A stretch of 64,000 nt of DNA from Epithemia pelagica (lineage: Eukaryota > Protista > Bacillariophyta): positions 62,001-126,000 of the forward strand of contig OX337241.1 of the NCBI GenBank assembly GCA_946965045.2, in the 5' to 3' direction. Under the pieces are notes generated by a model, which made no database searches, was not told the DNA's origin, and was given only the letters and a program-made list of their open reading frames with translations. This document shows positions 3,100-24,310 of the stretch, in pieces. The position numbers were made by a program, and so were the translations under genes. Positions within the stretch are counted from its first letter, which is position 1. The number at the start of each line of letters is the position of its first letter.

Positions 3100-3145
3100 A
3101 TCATCCCCTGTAGTCTGTCCAACAGGATGAATTTCCAGGCGTATG

Positions 3146-4480: not shown

Positions 4481-5509
4481 CGTCGTCTTGTTGTTTTTCT
4501 CTTTGTGGTTCGCATACAGAGGCCAGTCCCGATGGTTCACAGCAACGACAATTGTGTGTTACCAGCACCAACAGCCACGGCTCGCAACCAATGCTCCCAG
4601 TTTGAGAACAACAAGAGTTTGACTACTTGACAAGGATGGACGGGACGTAGGTTTAAGCATTCTCGTTGCCACTTCTATTCCAAACGTCGCAGTCTCTCGT
4701 GTTTCTTCAATCTTGGTGGATTCAACTGTTTGAGGTCCTCTTTTTCTGATGCCTTCGAAGTCAGATCTTATTGATCTTTCAAAATGATGTTGGTACTTCC
4801 AAGAGTCGTCTGCCAAGTTCCACAACGCCTAACAAAATATCATCGTGTCCAACTTGGCGATCAGTGTCGCACCATATTGAATGGCCAAGTCGAGGGATGG
4901 GAGTCATCCAAATAAAAAGGGAAGTTCACCAATTTGAGCATCCCTCTTTCCTTGTACGTTGACCACGGTAGTAAGTGTCGAATCATTTGTAGCCTTGATG
5001 ATAAGAATCACAGAAGAAGAGAGGTAGGAGCGTCGTCGTATTCCATCGATTTCCATGTTGGATCAGCATCTGTCAGAGTTGTGAGAGAATGCGCTCCAAG
5101 CTCTAGTTGATCATTGTACCGCATATCCAAGGTATGCCATTCAACATTCTTCTCCAATGTTTCCGAAACCTGTTTCATATCATGTGGTCAGTCATTATAC
5201 TATCTCCAACATTCAACGTTCGTCACCATGAGAAATAACGCAATGTTGTCATGGCCAATCATTGTTGTGAACAGTCTGTAGGACCAAGGGAAGAATGGCG
5301 TACCATAATAGGCGTTGGACGAGATCAAATTGGGGATATCTTCTCAGCGGATGTTTCATTGTCAATCTGTGGACCTCGCTCTTCATCATACGAGGACACC
5401 TCTTTATCACGGATTAATGAGATCTCGCGTGTATCTTAAAATTCTTATTGTAATACATCAGCAAAAGATACTTTTCATGGGGCTTGTCATGAAATCTATG
5501 TGCGATTGA

Positions 5510-6847
5510 ATGCCTTTCGCGACAGGCACGGCTCCACCCACTACGCTCTCCACGTCCACGCTGCGAAAGCTTCCACGCGTTGTGCTCAGTTATATGCCAT
5601 TTCTCTTGTCAACGTTGGAGAGCACCGTGACCATGACAATGACACTGAGAGAACAAGCGTGGCAGTCGGGCCTAGTCCTTTTGGACGAGACACCTGAATG
5701 GAATGAAAACGATTGGCCTCCTCTTCAGGGTGGATGGCGTTATCGTCCTGCTACGGTTGTACTTGATCATCCCGATCAACACAATAACATCAACAACAAG
5801 AGACAAACGGTCGTCGTGATGGGCGGAAATACACAAGACTTAGTCTTAACCAGCTCCGTTCTTGTAATGAATTTGGAGGGCCAGAACAAGCAGTGGCGAG
5901 AAGGGCCGCCCATGAACAAGAGTCGTCGAACACATGCCGCTGTTGTCTGCAACGGAGCTGTCTATGTGATGGGAGGACACAATCAAGGTCCATTGGATTC
6001 TATCGAACGAATCGATGCCATGGATGTGCTACAATCATCTTCGACATCAAGCAGCACACGTGCGAGCAATTGGACGACATTGAAGTGTCGCTTATCAACG
6101 CGAAGGTATGGATGTTGTGCTGTTGCGGTGCACAACCGATACATAATTGTAATGGGTGGCTACAGCAATCGTTATTTGTCGTCGGTGGATATTATTGATA
6201 CCAGCAATCACACTGTCACTGCTGGACCATCCATGAATGTCCCTCGACAATTTTGTTCCAGTGCGGTCATTGGTCACCGCATCTTTGTTGTTGGAGGTTG
6301 GAACCTGAGTGGCGATCTTGACTCGGTGGAGTATTTGGACCTCGAAAGGCCATGGGATGATGAAGAGATAAAAAAGGAGACTGGTTCGACATTTATTTCT
6401 TTCTCGTCCACCTGGATCACTCATTCTGATTTGGTGCTTTCCATTGCACGAAGTTCTTGTGAAGTGGTTGCCGTGGGCTCTTGTCTGGTGGTGGCGGGAG
6501 GACGAGGCAATGCAACCGTGGAGGTCTTTGATACGCATCACAACCGCATGTGGAATCTCCCATCATTCGTGAATCACCGCAATGGCTTCACCATGGTGAC
6601 TGTTGCCAATCAAGTTGCCATGATTGGTGGTGGATTCAATCCTACCTGTGCGACATTACCACTACTAGACAAGCATACGTGGTGCTTTCGTCAACTCTTT
6701 AAGCAGCAGCCCGACAGATGGTGTCTTTTTCGGGAAGGAATGAATACCCAACATTCTGATATTTCACCCTTCCCCACCTGGACATCAGCTCGTAAACGAG
6801 CAAGGCCCAATACACGCCGTGGTGATGAAGGCAAGGATGGAACTTGA
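5510..6847 (+). CDS. Kelch-repeat beta-propeller protein
   Basis: Six Kelch-type hydrophobic-GG motifs (VVVMGG, VYVMGG, IIVMGG, IFVVGG, LVVAGG, VAMIGG) with W..GP.M spacing. The true start may be an internal Met. Confidence 0.9.
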   Translation: MPFATGTAPPTTLSTSTLRKLPRVVLSYMPFLLSTLESTVTMTMTLREQAWQSGLVLLDETPEWNENDWPPLQGGWRYRPATVVLDHPDQHNNINNKRQTVVVMGGNTQDLVLTSSVLVMNLEGQNKQWREGPPMNKSRRTHAAVVCNGAVYVMGGHNQGPLDSIERIDAMDVLQSSSTSSSTRASNWTTLKCRLSTRRYGCCAVAVHNRYIIVMGGYSNRYLSSVDIIDTSNHTVTAGPSMNVPRQFCSSAVIGHRIFVVGGWNLSGDLDSVEYLDLERPWDDEEIKKETGSTFISFSSTWITHSDLVLSIARSSCEVVAVGSCLVVAGGRGNATVEVFDTHHNRMWNLPSFVNHRNGFTMVTVANQVAMIGGGFNPTCATLPLLDKHTWCFRQLFKQQPDRWCLFREGMNTQHSDISPFPTWTSARKRARPNTRRGDEGKDGT

Positions 6848-8699
6848 AATTTGCAACGTATTGCATGTATGTTGTATGTGCTAACATTGGCGGAACCATA
6901 GCATTGTCATTTTACTCTCAAACAGTAGTTGTATTGTTTCCCTTCATGGCATTGCGACCTGTAGAGATATCATGTACACCATTTTACTAGTAGAAAATGA
7001 AAGTTAAAGAAGTGGAGCCAGGCCTTGTGTGGATGTCCATGGTACCATGCCTCTCTGCTGTTGAATAGGTCGAGTTACCATGCTGTGGAAGATTATGGTT
7101 GCGTTTGGACGGGCGTCTTCGTTCCGACCATGCGTTTTTTTGTGAGGGGTCCGGTCCTTCTATGGCTAATGCCTGCGTCAGAGGACAGTTCCCCCTGTCT
7201 CTCGACGCTTGTGGTTTCAGGTGACAGGACATTTGCGAATCCTTCGGAATTTTTGCAACCGAAGTGTTTGAAATTTCCTCCACTACAGCAACTAGTCTTT
7301 ATCATAAGGTCGGCGATTTGCTCGCAATGGACCAGATTGACAACAAGGAATCGAGTCTAGTCGTTGCCACACCACAACCTCCCGAACTACCAACGCAGGC
7401 ACAAAAGAAGAAAGTCTTCATCTTTCCTCCTCCTAGCATACCTCAATTGGACGAAACTGATAGTATCATTGCCGTGGAACCGACTGTGTTCAATTTCCAC
7501 CACCACTACTTCCTGTCGCAGCATTACTCGTTCAATTGCTCATGCTTGGAAACAAGCTGCTCCCCATCGCGATGTCTTGCCCCTCAATGACAGTTCCGCC
7601 GAAACCTTGTTGCACGATACCCCACTGTCCAACAGCAGTGTCGGACATCGACCACTACAACATTTGTGCCTCGTACACCACCAACAAAACTACGACCCGT
7701 GCCGATCATGTCTTGGCTGTAGTCTACTAGAATTTCTTCTTCTTGTTGTTCTTGTTGTTCTTCTTCTTCTTCGCTGGATTCTGGTTGGTGTTTCTGCCTT
7801 GTCGTCGTTTCGAAAGGAAATGAGAACCTGAATGACACGCAGAATGCACTCGTGTTTTTCAATGTCAAGAATGTCGTGCCATTCAAAGTAACAGGAATCC
7901 AAATCCAATCCATGATGCAGTATGAATTGGTCTCTTGCATTCTGCTATTTGCGATTGCCGAGCTATGCCACTTACTTCGGCGTGTGTTCTGCTTTTAAAT
8001 CTATTGTGCCGTTGCGCGATGAATGTTTCTCTTTTCTTTCTTGGTCGTTTGAGCGCTATCGCATGAAGTGTAGACCATTTGTTCGCCTTCACTGCAGTAT
8101 AGGTCGTCTTCTTGGTTGCTATCTTCTCATTTTGCTTGTTCTGGGGTAGCAGTAGATGGTATATTGTTGGGCATAGAGCCAACATCTCGCGCTTGCCCGT
8201 CACACGTGCAGCGCGGAGGGCGTTGCTTCTTTGACGGCCACAAAATCTTCTCCAAACACAATAAATTCGCGGACGACCCCAACATGTTCCATGGATCCTG
8301 GTTTCTCATGCAAGCTCGCCATTGTACGACAATTCGATTCGATTCGTTCCATCTCATGGCGGTACACTCCGACTCTATCACGCAGTGGGTACTGACAAAT
8401 GTGGATGTGAGGTTGCAATCTCTTCGTCTGCATGCCGCGTCCGCGTTGTTTGTCGACCAAGAACAATGAATATTGTAGATGGATTGATGATAGATTCGGT
8501 TATGGTTCAGTAGCATAGAGAATGGTTTACATGTGTCGTGACACCATTCGTTTCGAGGAATCGAACCTGATTAGTCGTATTTTTGGGACTGCCCCATCCG
8601 ACAAAGTGATCAGCAAGAAGAACCAAGAATCAAAATCAAACGATCGATTGGATGGTTCGTAGGACGTACCAATTTTGTGGTAGGGTCAACCGAAGGTCT

Positions 8700-9977
8700 T
8701 CATGTTCCAATAGGAGTACCTTCCTTTCTCCGCCGGTGCCCCAAAAACACTTGGTAGCGTTTCTTTGGTGGTCTTTTCATTGGCCCTTCATGCGCTGGAT
8801 GGTTTGTTGTAGGATTTTGTTCGGACTGGAGCTGCTGTTGGGGTTTGTTCCCGACCAAAGCTTTAGCCAACACCTGGTACCGCTTCTTTGGTTTTTTGTT
8901 ATCCAAGGTTGACTCTTTGAATTTCGAACGACACCCTGTCTGCGGTGTCCAGGAGGTTCGGTAATATTCGGGAGGAGGAGAGCTACTGCGATACATGTCT
9001 CGGTCGATCAAATAGTCTTCGCCATAGACAGCCTTCCATCGACGCCTCGTTTCATGCACGGCTCCGAGCCAGTTGGACACGTTCGACACAGAGCGATCGT
9101 CGACCAAAAAGTCATGAACCAATGTCGATCCTTGTCGAAGGATCCGGCAATCATGGTTGTATCGTTCAATCCCCATCAAAATATGCGTTTGCCAAATCAG
9201 GGCAATTTGATAGGTAGGGACCAGATCACGCAAGGAAGAAGGTTTCGCAGTGGGACTAATATTGAGAGCCACAAATTTCATGTATTGCGAGACGCCTTCT
9301 CGTAGAAATGAGGTCTGGTCACGAGACAACATTTGTCGTGTGACGTGCCACAAAAACTCACCGTGCAGTCGAGTGCACGCAATGAGATAGTCCCTTGTCG
9401 CAGACGAGCCACTCTTGATGTAATCCTTTTTAGTGTTGTGCTTGTTGAGAAGGAGAAAGTGTTCATATGGATAAGTATTCCACCAATGATATCGCGCCAG
9501 ACTATTGTGGACCGTGCGCTCTTCCACAAAGTCAAAGGGTGCCTGGCACTCCAGAATATGTCCAAATCGTCTATGGCAGTACGCTTCGTAGCGGCCTGTT
9601 GATAGTCGATGACAATGCCACAACCAAGCAATGTCTGCGGGAGGAATCAGCACCGTCTCGGATGGATACTTGTTCACCAAAGGAAGCCAAAATAGCAGAT
9701 ACCGGTCCAAAGCATGATTCGAAGGGTCTTTTACCGTGACGCCAGTGGCATGAAGGCGCAGCATAAAGTCAATGTACTTCAAGGCATGGGCGACCAACTC
9801 CGACTCTACCCAAGGTGGAGACGAACCAGCCATTATTCGAATCCTTGACGCTTCGGTCATCGAGTCAACACCATTTGAGACATCTTCCGTTAATTCTTTG
9901 TCCACTTCATCGTTCAGAGATGATTTCATCATCATTTTCTTGTTGGTGTTTGGTTTTCTCTTTGTGGTCGCTCGCAT
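8700..9977 (-). CDS. GRDP-like/DUF1399 protein, copy B
   Basis: Intact ORF with PPADIAWLWHCHRL and LVPTYQIALIWQTHIL motifs. First in-frame ATG is at 9977; the ORF track starts at a TTG at 10052. Confidence 0.85.
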   Translation of the reverse strand: MRATTKRKPNTNKKMMMKSSLNDEVDKELTEDVSNGVDSMTEASRIRIMAGSSPPWVESELVAHALKYIDFMLRLHATGVTVKDPSNHALDRYLLFWLPLVNKYPSETVLIPPADIAWLWHCHRLSTGRYEAYCHRRFGHILECQAPFDFVEERTVHNSLARYHWWNTYPYEHFLLLNKHNTKKDYIKSGSSATRDYLIACTRLHGEFLWHVTRQMLSRDQTSFLREGVSQYMKFVALNISPTAKPSSLRDLVPTYQIALIWQTHILMGIERYNHDCRILRQGSTLVHDFLVDDRSVSNVSNWLGAVHETRRRWKAVYGEDYLIDRDMYRSSSPPPEYYRTSWTPQTGCRSKFKESTLDNKKPKKRYQVLAKALVGNKPQQQLQSEQNPTTNHPAHEGPMKRPPKKRYQVFLGHRRRKEGTPIGT

Positions 9978-10150
9978 TGTCGGCAACCTGGAGGGTTCGC
10001 GTTGGGAAAGAAAATGCGAACCTCCATGACAAGGTTGACAGTTCGAGAGCAAGACGTTCCAAGGACAAATAAAGTCAAATAATCTCTTGGTTGCTCACCA
10101 GGGCAAACAACGACGACGACGATCACCGAGACCCCCATCCCATCGTCTGG

Positions 10151-12826
10151 TTATATTTCTGGCTTTCTTGATCTCCGTTCCAGAAACACTTGATACCGTT
10201 TTTGGGGCCTTGGACGTGTCGATGACTCTTGTTGATTGCATGTGTGCTTGGCAGTTTGGATTTTTCCAGCTTGCACCTTGTGGCCTCTCGTCCTCACCAA
10301 AGATTCCGCGAACATTTGGTACCTTTTCTTGGGTTGCTTGTTTGGATTGGGTATAGCTTCCTTCAGAAACGGTTCGTCAACTGTGGAAGGGCTTGTAGGA
10401 CTTGTTGGTTTCTTGTTTGGAGTGCTGATACAAGTTTCCTTTGGCGTTGGTTCGTTCCATGTCGAATGAGCTGTAGGATTCGTTTCAATCGCCCCTCCTC
10501 GTGGCTTCCAACTCGCGTAGTAATACTCTGGAGGAGGAGTATCATCATCCCAATCACCATACCATTCTCCATATACAGCCTTCCAAAGACGTTGACTATC
10601 CTTCATGCAAAACCACCAGTGGGGCGTGTTGTCAAGAGAACGATCGTACACCGAGTCATTATGGACCAATTTCGATCCTTGTCGAAGGATCCGGCAATCA
10701 TGGTTGTATTGTTCGATACCCATCAAAATATGCGTTTGCCAAATCAAGGCAATCTGATGGGTGGGAATCAAGGGTCGGCATGAAACGAAAGTCATATGGT
10801 GACGTGACGTCAAATATCGAAAGGATGATGAGGTGACATCAGCGATGGAACTCAGAACGACAAATTTTGTATACTGCGAAACGCCTTCTCGTAGAAAGGC
10901 GTTGTTCCGAAAAGCGGGCTTTGTGATGTACCATAAAAAGTTGCGGTGCCGTTTGGTACAGGCTACCAAATCCTCCATTGTGGACAACCCACTCCAATAC
11001 TTGTTGGACAGCGGTTTGGGATCCGTGTTGCGGACGGCTTGCTCCTCCACAAAGTCAAAGGGTGCCTGACACTCCAGAATCCGTCCAAATCGTTCATGGC
11101 AATACGCTTCGTAGCGATCCGGTAATAGTCGATGGCAATGCCACAACCAAGCAACGTCAGTTTCCGGAACCAGTACCCTATCAGATGGAGCCTTGTCGAC
11201 CAAGGGAATCCAATAATTGAGATAGCGGTCCAAGGCATCAACCGATGGGTCATGTAGTGTCACATCCGTACCATGAAGGCGCAGCAAAAAGTCCACGTAT
11301 TTCAAGGCCTGGGTGACCAACTCCGACTCCTCCCAGGGAGGAGATGAACCGGCCATGATTCGAATCCTTGCCGCTTCCTTCATCAAGTCAACATCGTTTC
11401 GATCATCTTCTGTTGTTTCTTTCTCCCATGCATCGCTCAGGGGTGTTTTCATCATTCTCTTGACGGCATTGGCTTTCCCTTTGAGGTTCACGTTGTCGGC
11501 GACCCCTGCAAGCGTCTGGACTTCTTCTGTTGATTCGTGGACGGTTGTCGTAGAGCAAGGTTTGTGGCGCTGGTTTGTAGGGTCGTTACTGCACCGTGCA
11601 GAGATCTCTGGCTTCCAGGAGCAATGATAATAGTCGGCCGGGGAACAGTCCCGATCCATGTCGCCTTGGTCCAACCCATAGTCTTCAACATACACGGCCT
11701 TCCAATGACGTTGCGTATCGTGCACAGATTGCGACCAATCGCTGGTGGCGCAAGAACGGACGTAGGCCAAATCGTTTGGAATCAGTTGGGTCGATCCGCC
11801 GCCTCCTCGATGAATACGACAGTCGAGATTGTAGTCGGCAATCCCCATTAGCATGTGCGTTTTCCAAATCCAGAGAATTGAATACGTGGGCACCAAGAAT
11901 ACTGGTTGGAGACTGGAACTCAGCGCCACAAATTTTTGATATTGCAACACGGCATCTCGCACAATATGCTCTTTATTTCCCTGAGCAAGGATATGCCGAA
12001 TATGCCATAAAAAGTCGCGGTGCCATCTTGTCGATGTGATTATGTACTTGATTGCCAAAGAGTCAATCGAACCCTCCTTGGTAGACCATGGGGTATTGTC
12101 CATGATGCTAATGTTGGAGGAAAAAAAGGGTTCCTTTGGAAAGGCTTTCTGCCAATATTCCCGAGCGAGACTATTGTGAACTGTTTCTTGATCCACAAAG
12201 TCAAAGGGTGCCTGGCATTCCAGAATGCGTCCATATTGTTGTCGACAATAGTCCTCGTAGCGGTTTGGTGACAGGCGATGACAATGCCACAACCAGGCAA
12301 TGTCGGCCGGAGGAATGAGGACAGTCTCGGATGGATATTTGCCGACCAAGGGGAGCCAGAAATGGAGGTAGCGGTTCAACGCATGGATGAAAGTGTTTTG
12401 CTGTAGAGTGACGCCCGTGGCATGTAACCGCTGTAAAAAGTCCACGTAGTTCAGGGCATTTCGAACCAGGGTGGATTCGACCCACGGCGGAGAGGAAACG
12501 GCGATCATTCGAATCCGTGCCGCTTCTGTACTGCCAAGATTGGTCGAACGTTCGTCCATGGTCTGATTTCCATTGTCATTGTTTGTTTTGTTTTTGTCAT
12601 TGTCGTGTTGGTAGTTGCGTGTGTTGTTCACACATTTTGTCGGCGGCCGAAATGGTTCGCGTTTGGAACGAAAATGAGAACCTCCATGACACGAATGACC
12701 GGATGTACTTGTTTCTGAACCATTGAAAAAGGAATTCAACTCTTTCGGATCAACCAGTAAGGAACTTGGTTGACGCCTACAATCTGTTCCCACATTTCTG
12801 CTTGTCTTGGAGTCATCGACCATCAT
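10151..12826 (-). CDS. GRDP-like/DUF1399 protein with two tandem modules, copy C (891 aa)
   Basis: ATG at 12826. Two full modules, each with EAARIR..PPW.ES, WLWHCHRL and IW.TH.LMG motifs. Confidence 0.88.
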   Translation of the reverse strand: MMVDDSKTSRNVGTDCRRQPSSLLVDPKELNSFFNGSETSTSGHSCHGGSHFRSKREPFRPPTKCVNNTRNYQHDNDKNKTNNDNGNQTMDERSTNLGSTEAARIRMIAVSSPPWVESTLVRNALNYVDFLQRLHATGVTLQQNTFIHALNRYLHFWLPLVGKYPSETVLIPPADIAWLWHCHRLSPNRYEDYCRQQYGRILECQAPFDFVDQETVHNSLAREYWQKAFPKEPFFSSNISIMDNTPWSTKEGSIDSLAIKYIITSTRWHRDFLWHIRHILAQGNKEHIVRDAVLQYQKFVALSSSLQPVFLVPTYSILWIWKTHMLMGIADYNLDCRIHRGGGGSTQLIPNDLAYVRSCATSDWSQSVHDTQRHWKAVYVEDYGLDQGDMDRDCSPADYYHCSWKPEISARCSNDPTNQRHKPCSTTTVHESTEEVQTLAGVADNVNLKGKANAVKRMMKTPLSDAWEKETTEDDRNDVDLMKEAARIRIMAGSSPPWEESELVTQALKYVDFLLRLHGTDVTLHDPSVDALDRYLNYWIPLVDKAPSDRVLVPETDVAWLWHCHRLLPDRYEAYCHERFGRILECQAPFDFVEEQAVRNTDPKPLSNKYWSGLSTMEDLVACTKRHRNFLWYITKPAFRNNAFLREGVSQYTKFVVLSSIADVTSSSFRYLTSRHHMTFVSCRPLIPTHQIALIWQTHILMGIEQYNHDCRILRQGSKLVHNDSVYDRSLDNTPHWWFCMKDSQRLWKAVYGEWYGDWDDDTPPPEYYYASWKPRGGAIETNPTAHSTWNEPTPKETCISTPNKKPTSPTSPSTVDEPFLKEAIPNPNKQPKKRYQMFAESLVRTRGHKVQAGKIQTAKHTCNQQESSTRPRPQKRYQVFLERRSRKPEI

Positions 12827-13866: not shown

Positions 13867-14178
13867 CACTGCAACTCAAATCCATACTGAATAGGAATGG
13901 AATACAATATTCAGTTGATATTCTGAAGAAGGTTCCCCCAAATGTCACAACGGTTTTTTTTACATATTCAGTTGACGTAATTCCATATTCCGTTGAAAAT
14001 TCACCCGAACAGTTCTTTTTCACTTCAAAATCGACATTCAGTTGAAGCTACATCAAGAACTGTATATTTTACTCAGTTCTTATCGACAGGCATCTCCATG
14101 TGTTCGATTTTAACCAGTTGACCACACTAATTGAACTGTTTCACCTACACTATCAGTTGAAATGAACTGAATATTCCA
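13867..14178. repeat. Left TIR plus subterminal repeat array (ATTCAGTTGA-like)
   Basis: CAGTTG at 13912, 13969, 14039, 14115 and 14154; variant TTCCGTTGA near 13989; inverted copies (TGAACTG) near 14132 and 14163. Confidence 0.85.
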
Positions 14179-14206
14179 ACGAAAGAAAAACGCGACGACG
14201 ACGGCA

Positions 14207-14218
14207 CGAGAGAGAGAT

Positions 14219-14248
<30 letters not shown>
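14207..14248. repeat. Interrupted (GA)n tract just inside the left subterminal region
   Basis: gagagagagatgagagagagagagagagagaaagagaga. Confidence 0.9.
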
Positions 14249-14249
<1 letters not shown>

Positions 14250-14347
14250 TCACACACATATATACCCGAGAGACTGTCAATGAATGTCATCAATATACAT
14301 CTGTGTATCACATATATGTATATAATATCTTAGATGCTAAAGTATAT

Positions 14348-17130
14348 TCACTCTGTTTCGCCTCTCAATCTTTTAATTGATTTCCTGACCCTCGTACTCC
14401 TTGTCCCTGTCGTACTTTCTTTTGCCGCCGCCACCATGAGGTCATTGTAGCATTTGTAACAATACGCAAAGGTACATGTTTCCGTGTCCACAATTGCGTT
14501 CTTACAAGCCATCACCGGATTTCTCTGATTGATTTTCTTTCCATCACCACCAAACCTTACATTGCATTTCACACAATTCTTCGGCCAGATTTTCTTCTTG
14601 CTATAATATGATTCTGTGAAGTACGTCCCAATATCCTGTGGAATCAACAATGAAATATCTTTATGCGCACCCTGCGTGCAACATACTCCATCCTTTCTTT
14701 TTCGCTTACACGATTTAACATTCTTCTCACATCTCTTCTATACAACAACGAACACAATTCATTCTGAGATACGTCTTCAACATACAATCCAAGTGAATCT
14801 TTTGCCATCCTTACCTTTTTCGTCACTGGTTCCTCTTTACTGACATCATTTTCTTTCTCCTTACTCTGTATAGAAATAAAAAAGGAAAAGAACCATTCAT
14901 TAGAATAAATCCAGTATATGACAATAACACAGCAATAACGTGGGACACATGTCTTACCATTTCATTGTTTTGTTTGCTTATTGCATTCTTCTTGCATTCC
15001 TTTTGGTTGTCCCGCAACCCTCCATTCCCTAACACACTTGGATTCTGTGTTTCCAAAGGTACTATCGGATTCCCTCCTGATAATAGAGCACCATTACTGC
15101 TCGCATCCACTTCCTCGATAGAGTTGGCTTCAACATTGTTCTTATCCTTTTCGTTGTTTCCCGATGTCTCCAAATGAACACCATTGTTGCTCTCATTCCT
15201 TATTTCAATCGATTCAGATGGAGCATCATTGGTGCTCCTTTCCATTGTACTACCGGAATTTTGTAGAGCACCATTACTTCTCTCCCTCCTCTCTTGTTCT
15301 TCATCATAGGTTTGCACCCCACCTAGATCCTGCTCAATTTCCGTATTGCGGTCTGTCTCTTCTTGCGTGTCTTTCGAATTGTGTTGACATTCCATATCAT
15401 CCAACAACGGGGGCGACGTTGTAGTTTCATTCCCGTCCTCTTCATTGTCGTTGTCACAACTTTGCGAGTCATCATCGTCTTCTTCCATGTAATCCACTAC
15501 ACCCAACGGAATGATAGGTTGTCTAGGCTGCACTGACCCTCTGTAAGCATCACCATTTTGTTTTGTTATTGATCCATATGATCTTCCTGGCAATTCATGC
15601 ATGGTCTGTGGTTGCCTCCCACTTGCTATCGATCCATCGTTTCTTCCAGTCGACTCAGACAGGGAATTTGGCTGTCTCCCACTTGCTATCGATCCATGAG
15701 TAATTCCAGTCAACTCTGGCCTGGAATTTTGTTGCCTCCCACTTGCTATCGATCCGTGGGTTAGACCAGTCAACTCTGTCTGGGAATTGGGTTGCCTTTC
15801 ACTTGATATCGGTTCGTGGTTTCCATGGGTCAATTCAGGCATGGAATTTCGACGCCTCCCATGTTCAGGTGCATTAGTAATTCGATTCGATTGTCCTTCT
15901 TGATCCGTTAAATTGGAAATTTCAGCAGGATTTTTTTGCTGTACGACCAGATTCTTTCCCACAATATTTTTGTCCACTGGTCTTTCTTGCCGGGGTACGA
16001 AATGTTTTGCCCATAGCATACGAACACAATCCTGATTGATCGACACACCAACCTGTTCCGTCAAAAACTCACTCGCCTTCTCAAAGTCTGGAGTTGCACT
16101 GTTTATCTCGATGTCGGCGGTTTCCTCATCATCGCTAACGGACTGTGTTATCATTTTAAATAGGTAAGAACACAATCGGATCCAATTTAAATCAATAGCA
16201 TACACCACACAAAGTAATTACCTTGTCTGTTCTTACCACAACATAAAAACTCTGGGCTTCATTGTACTTGACTTTGTGTTCGTAGCTATTCTTCTTTCCT
16301 TGACCTTTTGTTAACGCCACACTCCATCCGGCGTTGCGGAGCATTGGCACCATCAGACTCGCTACAATTTGAGATTTGGCGGACCTCCCAACTGCCGAAA
16401 AACCACCCCTGTCTGTTGGACAAGACCTGGTTCGTTTTCCGTTGACATACTTGGGTTTTTGGATAGGAGTCAGAAACATCTTTTCTCTCAACATCCATTT
16501 ATCGATTGCTGTCGACAGCCAATGTCTGTCCTTATGGAACAAACGAACAAGTTCAAAGGCGAGAATCTGACTCTCCATAGTACTTTCCAGTTTGTTGAGT
16601 ATTGTTCGAAAATCCAAAAGCGAAGTAGGAAACGATGACTGCCCTGGGATCATAAGATTGAGATCCTTTGCACGCGAACGAATTCCATCCATGTACGTGC
16701 TGCAAATGAACATACGGAGGCTGTCCCGAATCTCCTTTATTTCCAAAAGCATAGCTTCTCCATCAGGTTCTGATTCTGTATCAGCAAGTCCATCTCTCGG
16801 ACGATTTTTGCGATACATCCACAACCTTGCCGCTTGTTCCGCAGTTTTTGGACCCACACCGATTTTACAATGGAAAAAGTTGCGGGGATATTCCAAGAAA
16901 TGCTCATTCATCACACTGTTCCCTGCTTCTGATACCTGATTTGCCGACACATTCCCACGAGCAACACTTGTCAAACGAGGTTCTGTATGGTTATGGCTGT
17001 CATTGTCATAACTTTGCTGTTCATCATGGTTACGATGTGAGATTGTAGAAACCGCTACCACACTTTCATTAGCATTCCTGATGGATTGAAGAGGAAGACC
17101 CCAATTGATTGAACCAAGTATAGACTGCAT
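14348..17130 (-). CDS. Multi-exon second gene of the transposon (about 810-845 aa) with a C-terminal Cys cluster; candidate TnpA-like accessory protein
   Basis: Exons 17130-16222, 16142-14958, 14865-14815 (or -14710) and 14635-14348 join in phase 0 through GT..AG introns (79 nt, 92 nt, and 179 or 74 nt). The last exon has CVKC...ACKN...CTFAYCYKC. The TnpA-like role is inferred from position only. Confidence 0.65.
15590..15865. repeat. Coding minisatellite, 60-bp unit (20 aa: NS..ELTG.THGSIASGRQP), about 4-5 degenerate copies
   Basis: CTCCCACTTGCTATCGATCC recurs at 15616, 15676 and 15736, with degenerate copies at 15796 and 15856. Confidence 0.9.
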
Positions 17131-17720
17131 CAAACAAAAACGTTTTTTAGACCAAGTAATATCCACCCATTGATATACATGAGGTTAAGACCAACACTCA
17201 CCATCGTTGTTCAACAACAAACACACAGATGTGTGTGGGGGTAACGACAATTTTTGGGACGAGAGACTCCTCCACATTCCAACTGTCATCCAATACCGTG
17301 TGGTACAGGATATTTGAATTTTTGTTAAAAAATATGTCCTTTTTTTGTCTGCTCAGAAAAATACTATGCATGTGGTTTACCTTGAGACACTAGGATTCAA
17401 AATTACATATACGATAACAAAAAATCCATAATCAATGATATGTCACACATGTGTCATTTCGGTATTGAACATAGATTCCACTATATCGGCTACTATAGTG
17501 CGACTGTTCTTGTAGAATATCTTTTTCCTCTCATTCATCGCGTCATTCTCTCGGAACGATCTTTTTTCTCATATCCATTCGTCGTCTCTCTCTTCTGTCA
17601 TCACAGGTCTCTCTCTTCCGTCAGAGCGTTGAATGCTTGCCAGAAATATTTGAGAGTAACAAGCACAGTCTCTATTTGCGGTTCAGATCGAATCATTTGT
17701 GATTTTTTGGGGGAGGGAAT

Positions 17721-20700
17721 ATGGAAACTATACAGATGGATTGTCCCCAATGTGGACGTCCAATATTCTGTGTCGCTTCATCTGAAACTCATTGCTTAAT
17801 GGATGGTTGCCTGTATGTTGGGGCCTGTACGAATCAAAAGGACTCCTGCACAAGATTGAACAAGACTGTTTATTGTTGTTCGTTATGTGCGATGGCACAA
17901 AAGCAAACCAGTTATTCCAGACCACGGGGTTATACATCGCAATGGAAATATATTGATCGCCATTGCGAGAGTATCTTCCACAAAAAACAGATACAGCTTC
18001 GCCAACAAGAGGTCCCATATGAACCAAAAGACACCGAAGATGTCTTCCAACAGATGGAGGGAAGTCAAGAGTCTGATTTGAATGTTATCAACGATTACGA
18101 ACAGAACCCAGACACTACAGCGTTGCCTACGCTCGAACAATTGTCTGCTATGGGATTTCATCCAGATTCAAGAACGCCAAGATTCCTTTACCACGAATTT
18201 CAACAAAAGGGATCAGGTGTGCGATACCTAACCGGTCAAGCTTTCTCTGTTGATCCAAACAAGGTTAGTCCAGAGGAGGCACAATTCTGTCTACAACTAT
18301 CTTCCTTGTTGGTTCAATTAACGGAACGACAGAGGGAAATGCTTTCAGAGGTACTCATGACTGCCGGCAACAACGGTAACCCCGCCTTAAGTATTTTCCA
18401 AACAATACGGCTGCCAACCACTACAGATGACTTTGATGCTTTCTTCTTATCGGGGAGAAAGGCTATTATACCCAACCTCCCACATCCCATTCCAAACGTT
18501 GTGGACAACGGTTCACATTCCTATGTCGGGTTGGTTGATTTGTAAGCAAATGAATTGGGTAAGGCATCATCTTTTGATGACTTTGAATTCTACACAAAGA
18601 TGACTCTTCGTCCCGATGAGGCAGTTCCAAGTGTATCCTGTACCCCAAGTGCTAAACGACTCATGATACAACTGAAGAGTACGTCGGAGACAGGTGATCA
18701 ATCATCTAACGAATTCGATATGTTCCTTTGGATAAGAGAATGGAGGGATGATTTTGATCCCAACAACACCAAGGCATCAAGAAATCAAGTGTGGTGCAAT
18801 ACCTACACAATATTGCCTCCCACCACAGAGTACTTGGCCGGTTCCAACACTTATTTCATGGGAGTTTCGGGTAAGGGGGATGATCATCGAGTGGTGGAAC
18901 AAATGATGTCGAATGAACTAGAACGTCTTTCAGAATCTCAAGTTGTTCTCTTCCATGGTGGATTACGGAAGAAAGTGAGGGTACATATTGGTAAACTCTA
19001 TGTTAGTGTCGATCGTCCAGAGAGGACAGCCATGTTCCAGATCGGAGATCACAATGGGTCCTATTCTACCTGTTGGGGTTACACAACTTTTGTCGACGGA
19101 ACACGGACAGTCAATCATTTACCCGCCTGTAATGACTGCCGGAAGAAAAGAATCTCTCGTTTATCATCAACGAACAATTCATAGGAAGCAACACCTGCAA
19201 CTGCTTGTTCGACATGTTGTGATTGGCGTCTTGAAGACACCAAAATGATATTCCTGGCTCCAAAGGAATATCCCTTATCGTATGATATGGCAGTTGATGC
19301 GCCACTACCACCACCCTTACGTGATTTATGGTTCCGTAAGGAAGAGATACAAGTTGAATCTTCCGAAGGTCTTGTCGATGCTACAGAAGGGGATGATAAT
19401 GAAATGAACAATGCCACGAGTACGGACCAACAGGTAATACCGGTCATTGATGAATCGATGGACGTTGGTAAGAAGAAAAAAAGGAGGAATAAGTCCAAGC
19501 CCAAACCAACACACAAGATATATCTACGTACTGTGAAACTTACCATTACCTGGTTGAAACAAGCCATATGTTTTGCTTACCATCAGATCAAGACAGTGAA
19601 ACCCAACGCTAGAAATCAACAAAAGTTCTGGACCAAAGGAAATTTCGTGTCGTTTTTAAAGACGTGCGGATGCACCAACAAGATTATTGATTCATTGTTT
19701 GCTCAAGCCGTCTCTAAAGAGACGGAAGTCAAAATTCCCGTGAGTTGGTATGATGTGGAGGCGCTTACAAGATGCCACTATGCACCGATGCATATGTTGT
19801 TTTTGGGTAATGCCAAAAGTAACATTGAAATGGTGTCCAGCTGGTTGGGCAAATGGAATAAACTTGCTACCTTTGGAAAACAAGCGAATCGCTATTTGCT
19901 TGCAATCCGAGCGTTGCGATGCACGAAATATTTTGCCTCGCAACCCTTGTCGACATCGACATGGGGAACTGGGGTTTGGGTTAGCGAAAACTACCTTTTT
20001 GGTAGTAGGCTATGGAAATTTCTGGTTTCCATTCCTGCCATATCCGATGACCGAAGTTTACGCAACAGAGAGTACAAGGACGAGTATCAGGCTATTATCA
20101 GGTTCATGTCATCGATGAATTTATGCTTTTCGAGAATCATGACAAACCGAACAGTGATACCACTTCTTCACGAGTATATCCTCTTGTATATGGATTGTAT
20201 GGTCAAAATAGACGACATTCTATTGCGTGCCGAGAAGCAAAAACGGAAAGCAAACTTCGTCAAGTCAAATTCTCTCGGAATGCTTTCCTGTGCGGTTGCC
20301 CATGACAACATGGGGCCGGCGCTATTACATTGGGAAGGTGGCTATTCCGGAGAACGCAAAATACAGCAAATGAAACCGTTGTTACATATCAAACGGAGTA
20401 ACATGGACTGGACGAGGATAACTATGCGAAAGCTGTATCAACAGGATACGCTTGAGTGGATGATGCAAAATATCCAGTCCGAATGCACACCGAAAACGAA
20501 TAACCGACAAGTCAACTCGTTACTCAAAATATACAAGAACAGGGACGAATTACTTCAGGCAATAACACGCAATGATGTGTTGTGTGGGTTTGTTGGTACG
20601 GATGGTGAAGTTCACCTCGCTTACAGACCTGTTGGTGAAGAAAGTGGTAATACAAGAGTTCAAGTGAAGACACTCATGATAGAATTCCGTGACGATGAGG

Positions 20701-21014
20701 GGTGCTATACAACATCAAAGTGCTGGGTAGCCCCAATTCGTGCAACCACAAACACAGTGGTCTACAAATCCCTGTCGGACCTACTGCAAGAATTCATTGC
20801 TGAAGTCATTTTGTTACTGCCACAGATATCGACAGAATCCGACGAACACATGAACTCTTACTACTGTCTGGGAAATCATTGGAGAGAGCGTACGTCCACT
20901 GGTTTTTTTGATCTGCTTCTCTCAATGACGATGTGTTCCGAATATAAGACTGATCTACAAAGGATAAAGTTGTTGGCAATGAATCTCATTAGATGTTGTG
21001 TAATCTACACTTAG
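17721..21014 (+). pseudogene. CMC-type DDE transposase (about 1,097 codons) interrupted by in-frame TAA (18543-45) and TAG (19182-84)
   Basis: ORFs 17721..18545, 18555..19184 and 19245..21014 share one frame. N-terminal Cys/His clusters (CPQC...CSLC...H..S..H), WRDDFDPN (first D), VDRPER (second D), CxxC...CxxC insertion, MHMLFLG..K, and GERKIQQMK (E). These resemble CACTA/CMC catalytic-core motifs. Confidence 0.75.
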
Positions 21015-22432
21015 CGTCATAGATCCATGGATAGTCGAACTTCTCAGATAGTATCGTCCATCCTTGTAGGCGTCGATTAGTTTTGAGTTGCTTTTTGAGG
21101 TACCCTGCTCTTTTGATAAGACGTAGAAGCTTCGTCGTTACACGAAGTGATGGACTGTCGTTAAGGAGGACTGCTTTGGTAACTGTCTCGTGAACGTCCG
21201 ATGTTGCAAACCATCTGGATGGATAGTCATGTTCGAGTAGGAATAAAATAAGATCATACAGACAGTGATGGTTTGCATGATAATCATAACCTGGATGAAT
21301 GAAATTCGGCAAACGAGTCCACTCTAAGACACAGGAAACCGTTTGTTTTGATACTTGTTCTTGTTTCCATTCGGGTATTGCGATTGTTGGGATAGATAGT
21401 GCAGGAGTGTCGTTGAGCAATGGCAAAAGACGATTCTTTGTCCCCAGGCGGGTGCCGACACACTTTCTTGGCATAAAAATAATGAGACCATGTCCCCATG
21501 TCTCGTTTGCATTGAGTCCCACGATTTTAGAAATGCATTTTTGGCGGCGTAGGGGAATTGTGTTTGAGTTCTTGTAAGACTCTGAAATAAGGTAAGGGAA
21601 CACTGCATTTGATTGTGGTTGTAACCCCACGAGCATCCAAAGATTTGTTTTTCCTTTCTAGGTAGATATCCCGTTTGTTGCCTGTAAGAATCATTCCACA
21701 CTTGCACCATTTCCCAACTGTAATATAAGTAACTTGATCCAAGAACCGCCTTGGTTTTTCCATGGTAAGTAGTACTTCTTCGGTACGAGCTCCAGTAAGA
21801 ATTTCGTCAACGATAATTCCAAATCCATGGTGGATGGAGAGATTGCCCAGTTTTTCCAAAAACCTATCGCTTAGTACACTCCCATTGGAGGCCAAGAGGA
21901 GTTCAAGGAATAGGACGGTAATCGGTTGGTCAATTGTCTTTTGATAAACACAACGCTTGTGCAATATTCGTAGACACAAATCTTCATAAGATTCGAGGCG
22001 ACGTTCTTTCATTATACCAGGTAGGTGGTACGGAAGTGGTGTTGTCCTATTTCGGCCAGATGTTGAAACATCTTGGCTTTGGGGACTGTAAATATAGGTA
22101 GGGCCCTCTTCAATTCTGAAATTCGCTGTGGACCAGCATTGCAAGGGTCCCAAGTCTCCCGATATGTAGCTCCCACATCCAACTAGGACACCATTTGTAT
22201 CGCCATTACTTAAACTTGTGATGGCAAACAAATTGGCATCAGAGCCGTTGGGAGTCAATTTCTCCAGACTGAAGAACCCGCGGGTGCATTGATGTATGAT
22301 GGAACGTAGTTCTGTTTCGGCGACTCGGTCGGATGAACATGAGTAATCGATGGCGCGGCGTTTGGTTGCTTGATGATTGCAGTCAATTAGAATGTAGGAT
22401 GCACCCCATTCATTCGCAAAGTCATCACCCAT
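20989..22432 (-). pseudogene. Class-III PLP-dependent aminotransferase-like cargo gene with a +1 frameshift near 21564
   Basis: Motifs in the correct order: TPNGSDAN (cf. SGSEA), GSYISG, LELLLASNG (cf. EPIQGEGG), IIVDEILTGAR (cf. DEVQTGFGR), YITVGK (PLP Lys), RGVTT, and after the frameshift WGHGL (cf. RGxGL). ORFs 21527..22561 and 20989..21636 overlap in different frames. ATG at 22432. Confidence 0.72.
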
Positions 22433-23274
22433 TATGAGGATCGTCCATTGACATATGAGAGAGAGAGAACAACACACGGAGAGACAACGAAAGAGAGTGA
22501 AGTATAATAAAAAAGGAATGAGACAGGATGCGAAAATGTGAGCGAAAAAAAAAATGAGCAAAGATGTGCTGTGTTAGTCTTAACGCCAGCAGAGTCTCGT
22601 ATTCTTATGTAACAATATGCAAGACCAAAAGGATCTACAAGCAAGACCAAATGGGAGCAAGGATGGTATATCTTGACTAGCGAAACAAGACTGAGTGAAG
22701 ATTGCGTGCTAACGGTAGATTTTCAAACAAATACAATTCATATTGGCAGGAAACTTTGGACAAATATAAATCGAAGGAATAGGATATGTAATACTATGCG
22801 AGTAAGACGAGTAGGATAAAGTAATCAGATTCTTTTATCATTGTTAATGGAATGATAGGGATTAGGATAGCTGTTCGAATATGAAAATGTCTTTCCAAAT
22901 ATCAAAATACAATATAGTTAAATGCAAGATGTTTCGGTAAAATATACAACGGGATGTTTCTGTTTGACCGTTGAGAATTAGAAATAATCTTGTATGTATC
23001 TTGTCGAAACATAAGAATACATACAAGCCTATACCAGGCAGGCCGGTATCCAACGGAAGATTCAAAAAAGACCCGTTGTCTCATTTTTTCAAACTTGTAA
23101 TATATATATATATATAGGATGAGAGAGTGAGAGAGAGACGAGAGACGATCGAGAGAGACAAGAGACAAGAGAGAGAGTGTGCTATATGATGATACACAGT
23201 AAGATACAAAAGAAAAGGGGGAATGGAACATAAAAAGGCTGTGTGAATGTTTTTTTATGTAATTACAGGAAACA

Positions 23275-24003
23275 ATGGCGAAAAGTCCGTATACATACTT
23301 CGTGTCGGAAACGACAATACCGGAGGCTGTTCCCAATCAAGCGATTTATTTCGTAATTGGTTTGGATTATCGTAAGAGATATTACAAGAATATGATGGTA
23401 AAGGCACTCGAGGCAGTTGGAGAAACAATTAAGAAGTCCGATTTTATAGAAGAGACAGATGAGGAGATGAAGTGCTTCGGGTACCCGACGTATAAAGTGA
23501 AAAAGAAGGCACCGAAAGAAGGTTTGGTTTTAGCCCAACGATACTTTCATAATCTTGGGTACAGGCCGCATACAATGGACTCGTTTGTGCAAATATACGA
23601 TTTGTGGAGGATGCGGAGTCTTTATCTCATTGTTTTGCAAGGTAAAGTGGTCTCGAAGATGTGTATTCTACATCAGGAAATCTTTACCTACGACGAGAAG
23701 GCAAATATCATGACAATTGCAAAATGTAATGAAGAAATCAATGGATATCCTCCAGAGGCAATGAAAGTAATGGATGTATCGGTGGAAACGCCTTTTGTTG
23801 CTGTGACAGTGTATGGGTTGGATAAAGAAGGTACGTATGATAGTAACTTCTGTGCCATATACACGTTGCCAAAGAAGAAGAACGGTGAAATAATAGATAC
23901 AACGGGAGACCATAATGATCACGATGACAACAACAAAGAGAACGACGATAATAACAAAGGAGATGACAACGATATTACAGCGATGACAACGACGACAAAA
24001 TGA
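23275..24003 (+). CDS. Hypothetical 242-aa protein inside the transposon (orphan cargo)
   Basis: Intact ATG-to-TGA ORF in AT-rich sequence, protein-like composition with an acidic D/N tail. No family recognised. An acceptor-like TTACAG just upstream allows for an additional 5' exon. Confidence 0.65.
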   Translation: MAKSPYTYFVSETTIPEAVPNQAIYFVIGLDYRKRYYKNMMVKALEAVGETIKKSDFIEETDEEMKCFGYPTYKVKKKAPKEGLVLAQRYFHNLGYRPHTMDSFVQIYDLWRMRSLYLIVLQGKVVSKMCILHQEIFTYDEKANIMTIAKCNEEINGYPPEAMKVMDVSVETPFVAVTVYGLDKEGTYDSNFCAIYTLPKKKNGEIIDTTGDHNDHDDNNKENDDNNKGDDNDITAMTTTTK

Positions 24004-24051
24004 CGAGAGAGAGAGAGAGATGTGACGAGAGATGAGAGAGAGAGAGATGAG
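24003..24051. repeat. Interrupted (GA)n tract just inside the right subterminal region
   Basis: gagagagagagagatgtgacgagagatgagagagagagatgaga. Confidence 0.85.
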
Positions 24052-24070
24052 AATTGGTAAAATGCTGAAT

Positions 24071-24310
24071 CAGTTCATGGTGAACTGAATATCAGACAAA
24101 CAGTTGATGTGAACTGTGGAAAGAGTAAAACAGTTGAGTAAAATAAATCAGTCTGCATACAGTTGACGATAAACAGAATAAACTTCAAACAGTTGATAAC
24201 AGTGATTAAATATGAACGGTCAACCTCTGATGTTATACAGTTGAGAAATGACTGATTATTTCTTAGACAGTTCAGATTTGTGAAATTCAGTTCGGATCTG
24301 AAGTGCAGTG
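24071..24310. repeat. Right subterminal repeat array plus TIR
   Basis: CAGTT(G/C) at 24071, 24101, 24131, 24160, 24190, 24238, 24268 and 24288; the element ends ...GAAGTGCAGTG. Confidence 0.88.

Follow-up and report, generated by a model that had tools for sequence, protein, structure and literature searches.

Eukaryotic DNA transposons that carry conserved extra genes are, to our knowledge, rare. The extra genes that are known (TnpA, the Harbinger Myb-like gene, VANC, TET/JBP and the red-algal PAG genes) have each shown either assembly of the transposition complex or evasion of silencing. Elements of the CMC/CMCT clade (EnSpm/CACTA, Mirage, Chapaev, Transib and Plavaka) display 5′-CA...TG-3′ termini and target duplications of 2–5 bp, and fungal EnSpm/Plavaka elements carry TET/JBP genes (PMC12730594). 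The giant Plavaka elements of red algae (accessory genes PAG1-3) encode an N6-adenine methylase plus SET protein and a ParB plus 2OG-oxygenase protein (bioRxiv 10.1101/2025.02.11.637652). Bacterial MocR proteins bind PLP and an effector through their PLP domain, which controls their binding to DNA (PMC6677901, PMC5320631).

The gene described here, from the window (the whole 64-kb stretch of DNA that was analysed, from a genome reported to be that of a diatom), resembles both groups. Like MocR/GabR, its intact product has a winged helix and a fold-type-I PLP domain in one polypeptide. However, MocR/GabR proteins have an N-terminal GntR-type wHTH, whereas the winged helix of the transposon protein is C-terminal, i.e. 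the order is reversed. The PLP domain of MocR/GabR is aspartate-aminotransferase-like (class I) and that of the transposon protein matches class III; MocR/GabR are bacterial and the transposon protein is from a eukaryotic element. Pfam searches gave no GntR, MocR or Aminotran_1_2 match to the transposon protein. The resemblance is therefore one of design and not of membership.

With the EnSpm/CACTA-lineage accessory genes (TnpA of En/Spm; fungal TET/JBP, PMC12730594; red-algal PAG1-3, bioRxiv 10.1101/2025.02.11.637652) the locus shares CA...TG ends, short duplications, a DDE-type transposase, conserved extra genes (in the known elements, for DNA-binding or modifying proteins) and sub-terminal repeats. 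Unlike the family found in the window, TnpA, TET/JBP and PAG1-3 include no protein of the PLP or aminotransferase-fold kind. Neither of the two papers contains the word “aminotransferase”, and a full-text literature search yielded no description of a transposon-borne aminotransferase gene. The list of conserved accessory genes of transposons is extended here by a PLP aminotransferase fold joined to a winged helix.

The features of the element are listed in Table 1. The element ends were fixed by an alignment of the whole element to a sibling (L011:8128-18575), which shows 97.0% identity over exactly positions 1-10444 and has other flanks and an AA duplication. Elements at loci L001 and L002 end likewise; their duplications are TA and CA, respectively. 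CACTGCA termini together with 2-bp duplications are thus present at four independent insertions (window, L001, L002 and L011), and in both respects all four agree with the CMC/CMCT clade. No long inverted repeats were reported at the element ends by the repeat finder; the terminal repeats are short and imperfect. The two end zones contain ten of the 13 CAGTTGA matches in the 64-kb window. The second accessory gene is present in all six of the other elements compared, and the fourth open reading frame has no match in L002.

Table 1. Positions of the transposon, its genes and its repeats in the window.
Feature	Position	Strand	Details
Whole DNA transposon, 10,444 bp	13867..24310	minus	CACTGCA...TGCAGTG termini; 2-bp target duplication GT
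Sub-terminal repeats, CAGTTGA x5, one end	13912..14160	plus	motif count
Second conserved accessory gene, ~300 aa, without Pfam match	16192..17166	minus	L001 orthologue (tblastn) matched in window and L002-L006
DDE-type transposase gene	17721..21014	plus	tail to tail with aminotransferase-like gene; in-frame stops at 18543-18545 and 19182-19184
Aminotransferase-fold gene, whole	20989-22432	minus	~480-aa product when frame is restored; frame broken near 21558-21566
Aminotransferase-fold gene, C-terminal part (frame B)	20989..21570	minus	small domain of the fold (WGHGLIIF, GTKNRLLPLL), then extension
Winged-helix domain, last 107 residues	20992..21312	minus	predicted; AlphaFold model of the window's own residues
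Aminotransferase-fold gene, N-terminal part (frame A), 301 codons	21527..22432	minus	NGSDAN, GSYISGD, LELLLASNG, DEILTGAR, TVGKW, RGVTT
Frame break	21556..21566	minus	2 nt absent from CACA run (CA on minus strand, TG on plus strand), between His and Thr codons of ...QELKH|TIPLRR...
Fourth ORF, 242 aa, without Pfam match	23275..24003	plus	common to L001 and L005 subfamilies
Sub-terminal repeats, CAGTTGA x5, other end	24101..24244	plus	same strand as first set

The transposase of the window is 52% identical to an intact 1013-aa open reading frame of L001. Its motifs WREWRDDFDPNNTK, DRPERT, C-x2-C, CHYAPMHM and WVSENY are conserved, and the motif order DDFDPNNTK, NHLP-C-x2-C, C-H-YAPM-H, WVSENY is kept at 22%–53% identity to L001 (the catalytic residues were assigned by eye). 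Pfam searches with the transposase and with the other three open reading frames found nothing even at E = 10; for the transposase this includes the Plavaka transposase model PF18759. Among 43 transposase relatives from a profile search, none has a Pfam domain or an informative name. The Atlas gave a feature similarity of 0.95 to clusters that have PF18759 in 34%–42% of their members, one of these clusters being from Bacillariophyta; the link to Plavaka is a lead from feature similarity only. The element had been assigned to the CMC group in the original prediction. Its termini, target duplications and catalytic-region motifs agree with this assignment, but a Pfam transposase match does not accompany them. 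The element is described here as an EnSpm/Plavaka-like cut-and-paste transposon.

The motifs NGSDAN, DEILTGAR, TVGKW, RGVTT and WGHGL of the aminotransferase-like gene are all on the minus strand and follow the canonical order of class-III aminotransferases, as had been predicted. The positions predicted for the Asp and Lys residues are also exact: the Asp codon (GAC) of DEILTGAR is at 21808-21806 and the Lys codon (AAA) of TVGKW is at 21712-21710 on the minus strand. These motifs are not a chance pattern: 34 homologues, at identities of only ~30%–60%, show no or almost no variation in them. The window copy also has the C-terminal string SLRVTTKLLRLIKRAGYLKKQLKTNRRLQGWTI. Extra residues do follow the enzyme fold, although the extension is ~125 residues in length and not ~100 as first estimated.

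A break in the frame was correctly foreseen, but its nature is different from that proposed. Instead of one extra T at 21563-65, there is a 2-nt loss in a CACA run relative to the intact sibling P0158 (97% identical), which reads ...QELKHTIPLRR... across the lesion site. Contigs from three sequencing runs (X1-X3) have TG inserted after 21558. Both stop codons of the window transposase are also changed in read contigs (18544 A>T, 19182 T>C). An intron was considered in place of a frameshift, as a 22-nt GT...AG sequence of the right phase is found near the break; it was rejected, since P0158 and all homologues read through (...KH-TIPLRR...). With 2 nt missing from the aminotransferase-like gene and two stop codons in the transposase, the window copy is dead. 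It is a decayed pseudogene of which intact siblings exist.

A fold model was made with AlphaFold for P0002, an intact relative with 65% identity to the window copy (pLDDT 88.7, pTM 0.90). Absence of a fold-type-I PLP domain had been named beforehand as a possible refutation. The predicted structure is that of a class-III aminotransferase: the top 50 Foldseek matches are all class-III aminotransferases (E-values from 1e-9 to 3e-8), and VIA gave Z 25–27 to proteins of this class (310–327 aligned residues, rmsd 3.6–4.5 Å, model residues 1–355). An Atlas shape search with the aminotransferase-fold protein returned Aminotran_3 clusters. Sequence profiles give weaker signals. Pfam Aminotran_3 scores 16.2 bits with the window piece (E = 0.004) and 19.4 bits with P0002, both under the gathering cut-off of 30.5 bits; with 9 of 15 aligned sequences (13 family proteins and two window pieces) the E-value is 0.01 or less, the best being 1.1e-6. 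A family profile matched class-III aminotransferases in the PDB with E-values of 8.5e-5 to 1.7e-4. The intact protein is thus modelled as a compact class-III fold-type-I aminotransferase domain with the signature PLP-site motifs, followed by a basic winged helix.

The residues of the putative PLP site are highly conserved in 34 family sequences. G63 is invariant and position 64 is S in 31 and T in three sequences; E177, D209 and R335 are each present in 34/34, K241 in 33/34 and T272 in 32/34. In class-III aminotransferases the Asp of the DE(V/I)xTG motif binds the ring nitrogen of PLP. In HMMER alignments to GABA aminotransferase, E177 falls on the EP motif and the DEIxTG Asp on the DEVQTG motif; DEIxTG was also aligned with DEVATG of BioA. 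The invariant Arg of the NRLLP motif is presumably the carboxylate-binding Arg. In class-III aminotransferases the Schiff-base Lys is ~29–31 residues past the Asp, beyond the next β-strand. The family Lys is 32 residues past the Asp and immediately after a predicted strand (positions 234–239). In the HMMER alignment to 6jix the PDB lysine is ~5 residues earlier than the family Lys, and a sub-profile search of the PDB for the Schiff-base Lys aligned only the DEIxTG region (E ~0.9). Motif, spacing and predicted strand position suggest that this Lys may form the Schiff base. The aminotransferase-fold protein may bind PLP and may be enzymatically active.

Known class-III aminotransferases (PF00202), e.g. 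M. tuberculosis lysine ε-aminotransferase (2cin), dialkylglycine decarboxylase (1dgd), GABA aminotransferase (4y0i) and omega-transaminases, share with the transposon protein the two-domain fold-type-I architecture over ~320 residues and a common motif order: GS-x-AN, aromatic-x-G, E, DE-x-x-TG, Lys ~30 residues later, a Thr motif, and Arg-x-x-P in the small domain. The identity, however, is only 12%–17%, and the tested transposon members are under the Pfam cut-off. The transposon protein has a compact domain (~355 residues), and its alignments start at about residues 33–51 of the solved chains; it appears to be without the usual N-terminal segment. It also differs in its C-terminal winged helix, and in being encoded by a multi-copy transposon gene as opposed to a metabolic locus.

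The absence of a wHTH in the C-terminal extension had likewise been named as a refutation, and a winged helix was found by AlphaFold, Foldseek and VIA. The model of the window's own C-terminus (pLDDT 82.6) has H-S-H-H-S-S topology, with helices at positions 11–27, 37–48 and 56–68 and strands at 34–36, 72–76 and 83–87. The top Foldseek matches are PerR/Fur, MecI, AspA, TubR and Z-alpha, with probabilities of 0.93–1.00 but E-values of only 7e-3 to 5e-2. VIA gave Z 9.3 for Fur (rmsd 2.2 Å, 71 residues), 8.7 for PerR and 8.4 for DpnI; the overall range of 8–9.3 covers Fur/PerR, DpnI, cullin WHB and Z-alpha.

Winged helices that make protein contacts (cullin WHB, ESCRT-II and Cdt1) are also among the VIA matches. 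Together with the complete aminotransferase motif set, they would fit a small-molecule metabolic enzyme that is of benefit to element or host, for instance through the synthesis or breakdown of an amine, and that uses its winged helix for protein-protein contacts. This appears improbable. The matches closest in rmsd are DNA-binding domains, i.e. Fur and PerR (~2.0–2.2 Å over 71 residues), DpnI and Z-alpha, and of 24 members compared, 23 have a strongly basic helix 3 plus wing (net charge +9 in the window copy; family mean +4.6). A metabolic benefit would also leave the strict linkage to the transposase, described below, unexplained. The basic charge suggests that the winged helix may bind DNA.

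The window, L001-L006, L008 and L011 all pair an aminotransferase-like gene with a member of one transposase family, at transposase identities down to 20%–28%, and the two genes are tail to tail in every element examined. The pairing recurs in five subfamilies sampled in the assembly, in a second genome and in one metagenome contig; one cluster has 273 members at ≥90% identity in a second assembly. It had been stated beforehand that single-copy host genes unlinked to transposons would argue against the prediction. Instead, every homologue locus that was fetched is in the same kind of transposon by the same transposase family, and no family member was found outside an element at any of these loci. 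Among 47 relatives (all with E-values of 2.7e-43 or less) there is no ordinary aminotransferase. A viral origin was rejected, as IMG/VR contigs gave no relative. No RNA run that contains the gene was found.

The dN/dS of the aminotransferase-like gene is 0.09 and 0.15 in two pairs taken between subfamilies. Intact open reading frames of ~480 aa are kept in elements whose transposases are only 20%–50% identical, and the winged-helix fusion is conserved across the family. These data bear on the possibility that a host aminotransferase gene or fragment was captured and is passive, decaying cargo with no function in the element. DNA transposons do capture host genes and the window copy is frameshifted, but passive cargo is very hard to reconcile with purifying selection between subfamilies, intact reading frames beside such divergent transposases, a conserved wHTH fusion and the lack of both free-standing members and ordinary aminotransferases at the loci and among the relatives just described. 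The original prediction was right to place the gene on a transposon, but “cargo” is too weak a term for a conserved element component. Because the pairing recurs and dN/dS is 0.09–0.15, the aminotransferase-like gene is a core accessory gene of this element lineage, under purifying selection.

The window contains a decayed copy of an EnSpm/Plavaka-like accessory gene. On balance it is considered slightly more likely than not that the intact product is a PLP-loaded dimer that acts as a DNA-binding helper at the element ends. Class-III aminotransferases are obligate dimers with active sites at the dimer interface; the intact protein would therefore be expected to dimerise, loaded with PLP, and to present two winged helices. 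These may bind DNA of the element itself, most plausibly the sub-terminal CAGTTGA-type repeats, and the protein would then serve as the DNA-binding helper of the element, in a role like that of TnpA of En/Spm. The PLP pocket may serve as a sensor for a small amine or an amino acid, as it does in MocR/GabR of bacteria, or may catalyse a reaction at the repeat site.

Catalysis could also be the main function. The protein might be an active PLP enzyme aimed at DNA or chromatin and directed against host silencing, in which a class-III (omega-type) transaminase is targeted to DNA by its winged helix and interconverts an aldehyde or ketone on DNA or chromatin with an amine; formyl-pyrimidine from TET/JBP-type oxidation is a candidate substrate. 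The PLP-site motif set, the invariant NRLLP Arg included, is kept in 31–34 of the 34 sequences. Amine (omega) transaminases, whose substrates are aldehydes and ketones, are among the best structural matches. EnSpm/Plavaka-lineage elements of fungi and red algae carry accessory enzymes that modify DNA or chromatin. Yet MocR-type regulators also keep catalytic residues without turnover, we know of no PLP enzyme that acts on DNA in eukaryotes, and no result points to a substrate. Every element has the gene, even those whose transposases are very distant; a role in transposition agrees better with this than an optional addition against silencing. A DNA-directed enzyme is considered rather unlikely. 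Distinctly improbable is its most specific form, a DNA-tethered omega-type transaminase that acts on the DNA of its own transposon, where it turns an aldehyde base (candidates are 5-formylcytosine and 5-formyluracil produced by TET/JBP-like oxidation, and abasic sites) into an amine as an escape from silencing.

The transposon protein mirrors, in reversed order, the MocR design of a PLP domain that gates DNA binding. No eukaryotic analogue of MocR-type control is known to us; a helper protein that works as a sensor or scaffold would be the first, and might couple transposition to the status of amino acids or vitamin B6. Catalysis on DNA or chromatin would be new chemistry, and conversion of an aldehyde base to an amine would be a previously unknown kind of DNA modification in eukaryotes. 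As the window copy is a pseudogene, intact siblings (e.g. P0158 in L011) are the ones to study.

The transposase has an N-terminal Cys cluster of its own. This cluster, or the other open reading frames, could bind the sub-terminal repeats instead of the winged helix.

The aminotransferase-like gene at 20989-22432 (minus strand) lies in an island of lower GC and is read in two frames (see table). Its minus-strand translation contains all of the motifs claimed in the original prediction, in the same order, and the putative PLP-binding Asp (GAC at 21808-21806, within VDEILTGAR) and putative Schiff-base Lys (AAA at 21712-21710, within TVGKW) are exactly where they had been placed. Searches took the fragments of the broken gene one by one, without a repaired or joined construct, and modelling drew on intact natural siblings. 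Pfam Aminotran_3 gives a sub-threshold match to the window copy (E = 0.004, 16.2 bits; cut-off 30.5), and GABA aminotransferase is matched among PDB sequences at E about 0.07. Identification as an aminotransferase would be weak from this sequence alone.

Features of the transposon, and conserved residues of the aminotransferase-like protein (counts from the 34-sequence alignment)
Feature	Position	Strand	Remarks
Aminotransferase-like gene, frame A	21527-22432	minus	ORF of 301 codons, ATG at 22432
Aminotransferase-like gene, frame B	20989 to about 21570	minus	ORF in another frame
C-terminal segment, last 107 residues of window copy	20992-21312	minus	Modelled; predicted structure
Second conserved gene, about 300 aa	16192-17166	minus	No Pfam match
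ORFs near the about 300-aa gene	14823-16208, 14348-14650	minus	
Element ends	CACTGCAACTCAAATCC... at 13867; imperfect inverted copy ends at 24310		GT duplication
NGSDAN	G63, S64		G63 invariant; S64 is S in 31/34, T in 3/34
Gly-Ser-Tyr	G87-S88-Y89		34/34, 33/34, 33/34
Glu	E177		Invariant
DEIxTG	D209-E210, T213, G214		D209-E210 and T213 invariant; G214 in 33/34
Lys	K241		33/34
Arg-Gly and Thr	R268, G269, T272		32/34, 33/34, 32/34
Trp-Gly	W313-G314		Invariant
Arg	R335		Invariant

A word-based search yielded intact homologues of about 480 aa (49%-66% identity), located on large contigs from a single ENA assembly, together with more distant homologues. A profile search gave 47 family proteins, all with E = 2.7e-43 or lower and none of them an ordinary aminotransferase. 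No relative was found in the IMG/VR viral contigs. The motifs of the original prediction are invariant or nearly so in an alignment of 34 sequences with a mean column identity of 29%. Family profiles match class-III aminotransferases in the PDB (E = 8.5e-5 to 1.7e-4); in these alignments, E177 and the DEIxTG Asp correspond to the EP and DEVQTG motifs, respectively, in GABA aminotransferase. The conserved Lys is 32 residues past this Asp; the spacing in canonical class-III enzymes is about 29-31 residues. The alignment in a sub-profile PDB search does not pass through the Lys, and its putative role as the Schiff-base residue is judged from its motif, spacing and position right after a predicted strand (234-239).

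Since the window product is broken, P0002, an intact relative with 65% identity, was modelled with the 34-sequence alignment as input (pLDDT 88.7, pTM 0.90). The best 50 Foldseek matches of this model in the PDB are all class-III enzymes (E = 1e-9 to 3e-8), including omega-transaminases, GABA aminotransferase, lysine epsilon-aminotransferase and caprolactam racemase. VIA-align gives Z = 25-27 over 310-327 aligned residues; model residues 1-355 are covered, and the aligned part of the chains begins at about residue 33-51 and ends at about residue 416-457. Aminotran_3 clusters were also returned by the Atlas shape search and by a language-model search. These structural matches point to the fold-type-I PLP domain that had been proposed, predicted here as a compact class-III fold whose alignments start at about residue 33-51 of the solved chains.

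The C-terminal segment was modelled from the window's own residues and 23 homologous tails. The model (pLDDT 82.6) has the topology H-S-H-H-S-S. Winged-helix domains head its Foldseek matches, including PerR/Fur, MecI, AspA, TubR, Z-alpha, MarR, ArsR and TFIIE, with probabilities of 0.93-1.00 but E-values of only 7e-3 to 5e-2. A scan of 48,161 chains that does not depend on Foldseek gave Fur at Z = 9.3 (rmsd 2.2 A over 71 residues), PerR at 8.7, the DpnI winged helix at 8.4, and cullin WHB, E2F and Z-alpha at about 8. The model and both scans thus support the suggested winged-helix extension as a predicted fold. The net charge of helix 3 plus the wing is +9 for the window copy, with a family mean of +4.6; the part preceding them averages -2.6. 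We infer that this domain binds DNA.

P0158, the protein of a sibling element (L011), is intact at 481 aa and has 97% and 93% identity to the two window pieces. It reads ...QELKHTIPLRR..., thus the lesion in the window gene is a 2-nt deletion within a CACA run, not the single extra base suggested originally. The window transposase (17721-21014) is interrupted by two in-frame stop codons, 18543-18545 and 19182-19184. In L011 the transposase has one stop, and a third copy of the aminotransferase-like gene in the assembly (P0159 and P0160) is broken at another place. Logan contigs from three DNA runs of the same organism match the region with 1-17 differences per aligned piece and show intact letters at all three lesions (TG inserted after 21558, 18544 A>T, 19182 T>C). 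These contigs may stem from sibling copies or from a different haplotype or strain. Roughly 40 differences from run contigs, mostly transitions, are listed over 18400-22700; in run X1 there are 9 A>G, 7 G>A, 5 T>C, 3 C>T and 5 transversions. At 18614-18738 two variant contigs of 125 nt coexist, thus more than one element version is present in the runs.

The L011 sibling (L011:8128-18575) displays 97.0% identity to the window element and aligns over exactly positions 1-10444, which independently confirms the boundaries; its flanks are unrelated and it has an AA duplication. These termini recur in L001 and L002, which are more divergent, and the duplications there are TA (L001) and CA (L002). 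CAGTTGA occurs 13 times in the 64-kb window, and 10 of these sites are within 300 bp of the two element ends, where they share a single strand. The sub-terminal repeats of other subfamilies are subfamily-specific variants with an ACTGA core.

The transposase has 52% identity to an intact 1013-aa open reading frame of L001 and keeps, in order, the motifs WREWRDDFDPNNTK, DRPERT..GDHNG, NHLP-C-x2-C, C-H-YAPM-H and WGTGVWVSENY. Judged by eye, this order agrees with the D...D...C(2)C...H(3-4)H...E layout of the EnSpm-Mirage-Chapaev-Transib-Plavaka clade, whose elements end in CA..TG and have duplications of 2-5 bp (PMC12730594), as seen here. No Pfam match was found for the transposase, nor any Pfam domain among its 43 relatives, and Plavaka specifically is indicated only by Atlas feature similarity (0.95; one of the clusters is from Bacillariophyta). 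The element is therefore termed EnSpm/Plavaka-like, not proven Plavaka. The N-terminus of the transposase is Cys-rich in the window (17721-17900, plus strand; CPQCG...C...C...CC..C) and in L002; the open reading frames called in L001 and L006 lack it. This stretch is a possible zinc finger and may rival the winged helix as end-binding module.

The original prediction had asked whether homologues in other diatoms sit beside CMC transposases; the homologues examined sit beside this EnSpm/Plavaka-like transposase family. The two genes are tail to tail in five subfamilies sampled in the window's assembly (ERZ21939226) and, in a second assembly (ERZ25042306), in three elements; individual clusters at 90% identity in that assembly hold 273, 119 and 41 members. 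Both also occur on one JGI metagenome contig of 9.9 kb, separated by about 5 kb that holds other open reading frames; the transposase there has only 20%-28% identity. Judged by matching contig sizes, most other paralogues of both proteins also pair up. Nei-Gojobori dN/dS is 0.09 for L001 and L005 (dS 0.65) and 0.15 for L003 and L006 (dS 0.50). The gene is carried by a transposon, as proposed, but the selection and linkage data contradict passive cargo: it has long been kept under selection as part of the element lineage and is not a passenger. Full-text literature searches for aminotransferases carried by transposons turned up no account of such a gene, and the most relevant transposon papers (PMC12730594; bioRxiv 10.1101/2025.02.11.637652) do not mention one.

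The mechanism goes beyond these observations. Class-III aminotransferases work as obligate dimers whose subunits share active sites, so the protein would display two basic winged helices. In the reading we tentatively prefer, at a little short of an even chance, these would recognise the element's sub-terminal repeats and the protein would be a DNA-binding helper comparable to En/Spm TnpA, with its PLP pocket serving as a ligand sensor or structural cofactor, as in bacterial MocR/GabR proteins (PMC6677901, PMC5320631). The main rival, a truly catalytic transaminase directed at DNA or chromatin and used against silencing, seems to us rather unlikely; it would fit with what other elements carry, namely TET/JBP genes in fungi (PMC12730594) and, in red-algal Plavaka elements, accessory genes for a methylase and an oxygenase (bioRxiv 10.1101/2025.02.11.637652).

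The about 300-aa gene is kept in all six other elements compared, with 40%-72% identity to the L001 copy; in the second genome it is on the opposite side of the aminotransferase-like gene. An adjoining open reading frame has a coding tandem repeat of 60 nt (15563-15862). The convergent open reading frames of the window overlap by 26 nt (20989-21014), because that of the transposase extends about 30 codons beyond the end in its relatives; in L001, L002 and L011 they are separated by 26-50 nt. The element on the JGI metagenome contig (L008:96-9505) is distant: its aminotransferase-like gene has 40% identity, and the intervening open reading frames differ, encoding 502 and 380 aa, with a faint LRR match in one of them. 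It appears to share only the aminotransferase-like gene and the transposase with the window element.

Just outside the element are genes with GRDP-like domains at 8700-10052 and 10151-12826 (both minus strand; PF07173, E = 4e-24 and 2e-36), with internal duplications at 11028-11377 and 12174-12526. Ty1/copia-type retrotransposon genes (RVT_2, gag, zf-CCHC) are often near L001, L003, L004, L006 and L011, which suggests that elements of this family sit in repeat-rich neighbourhoods.
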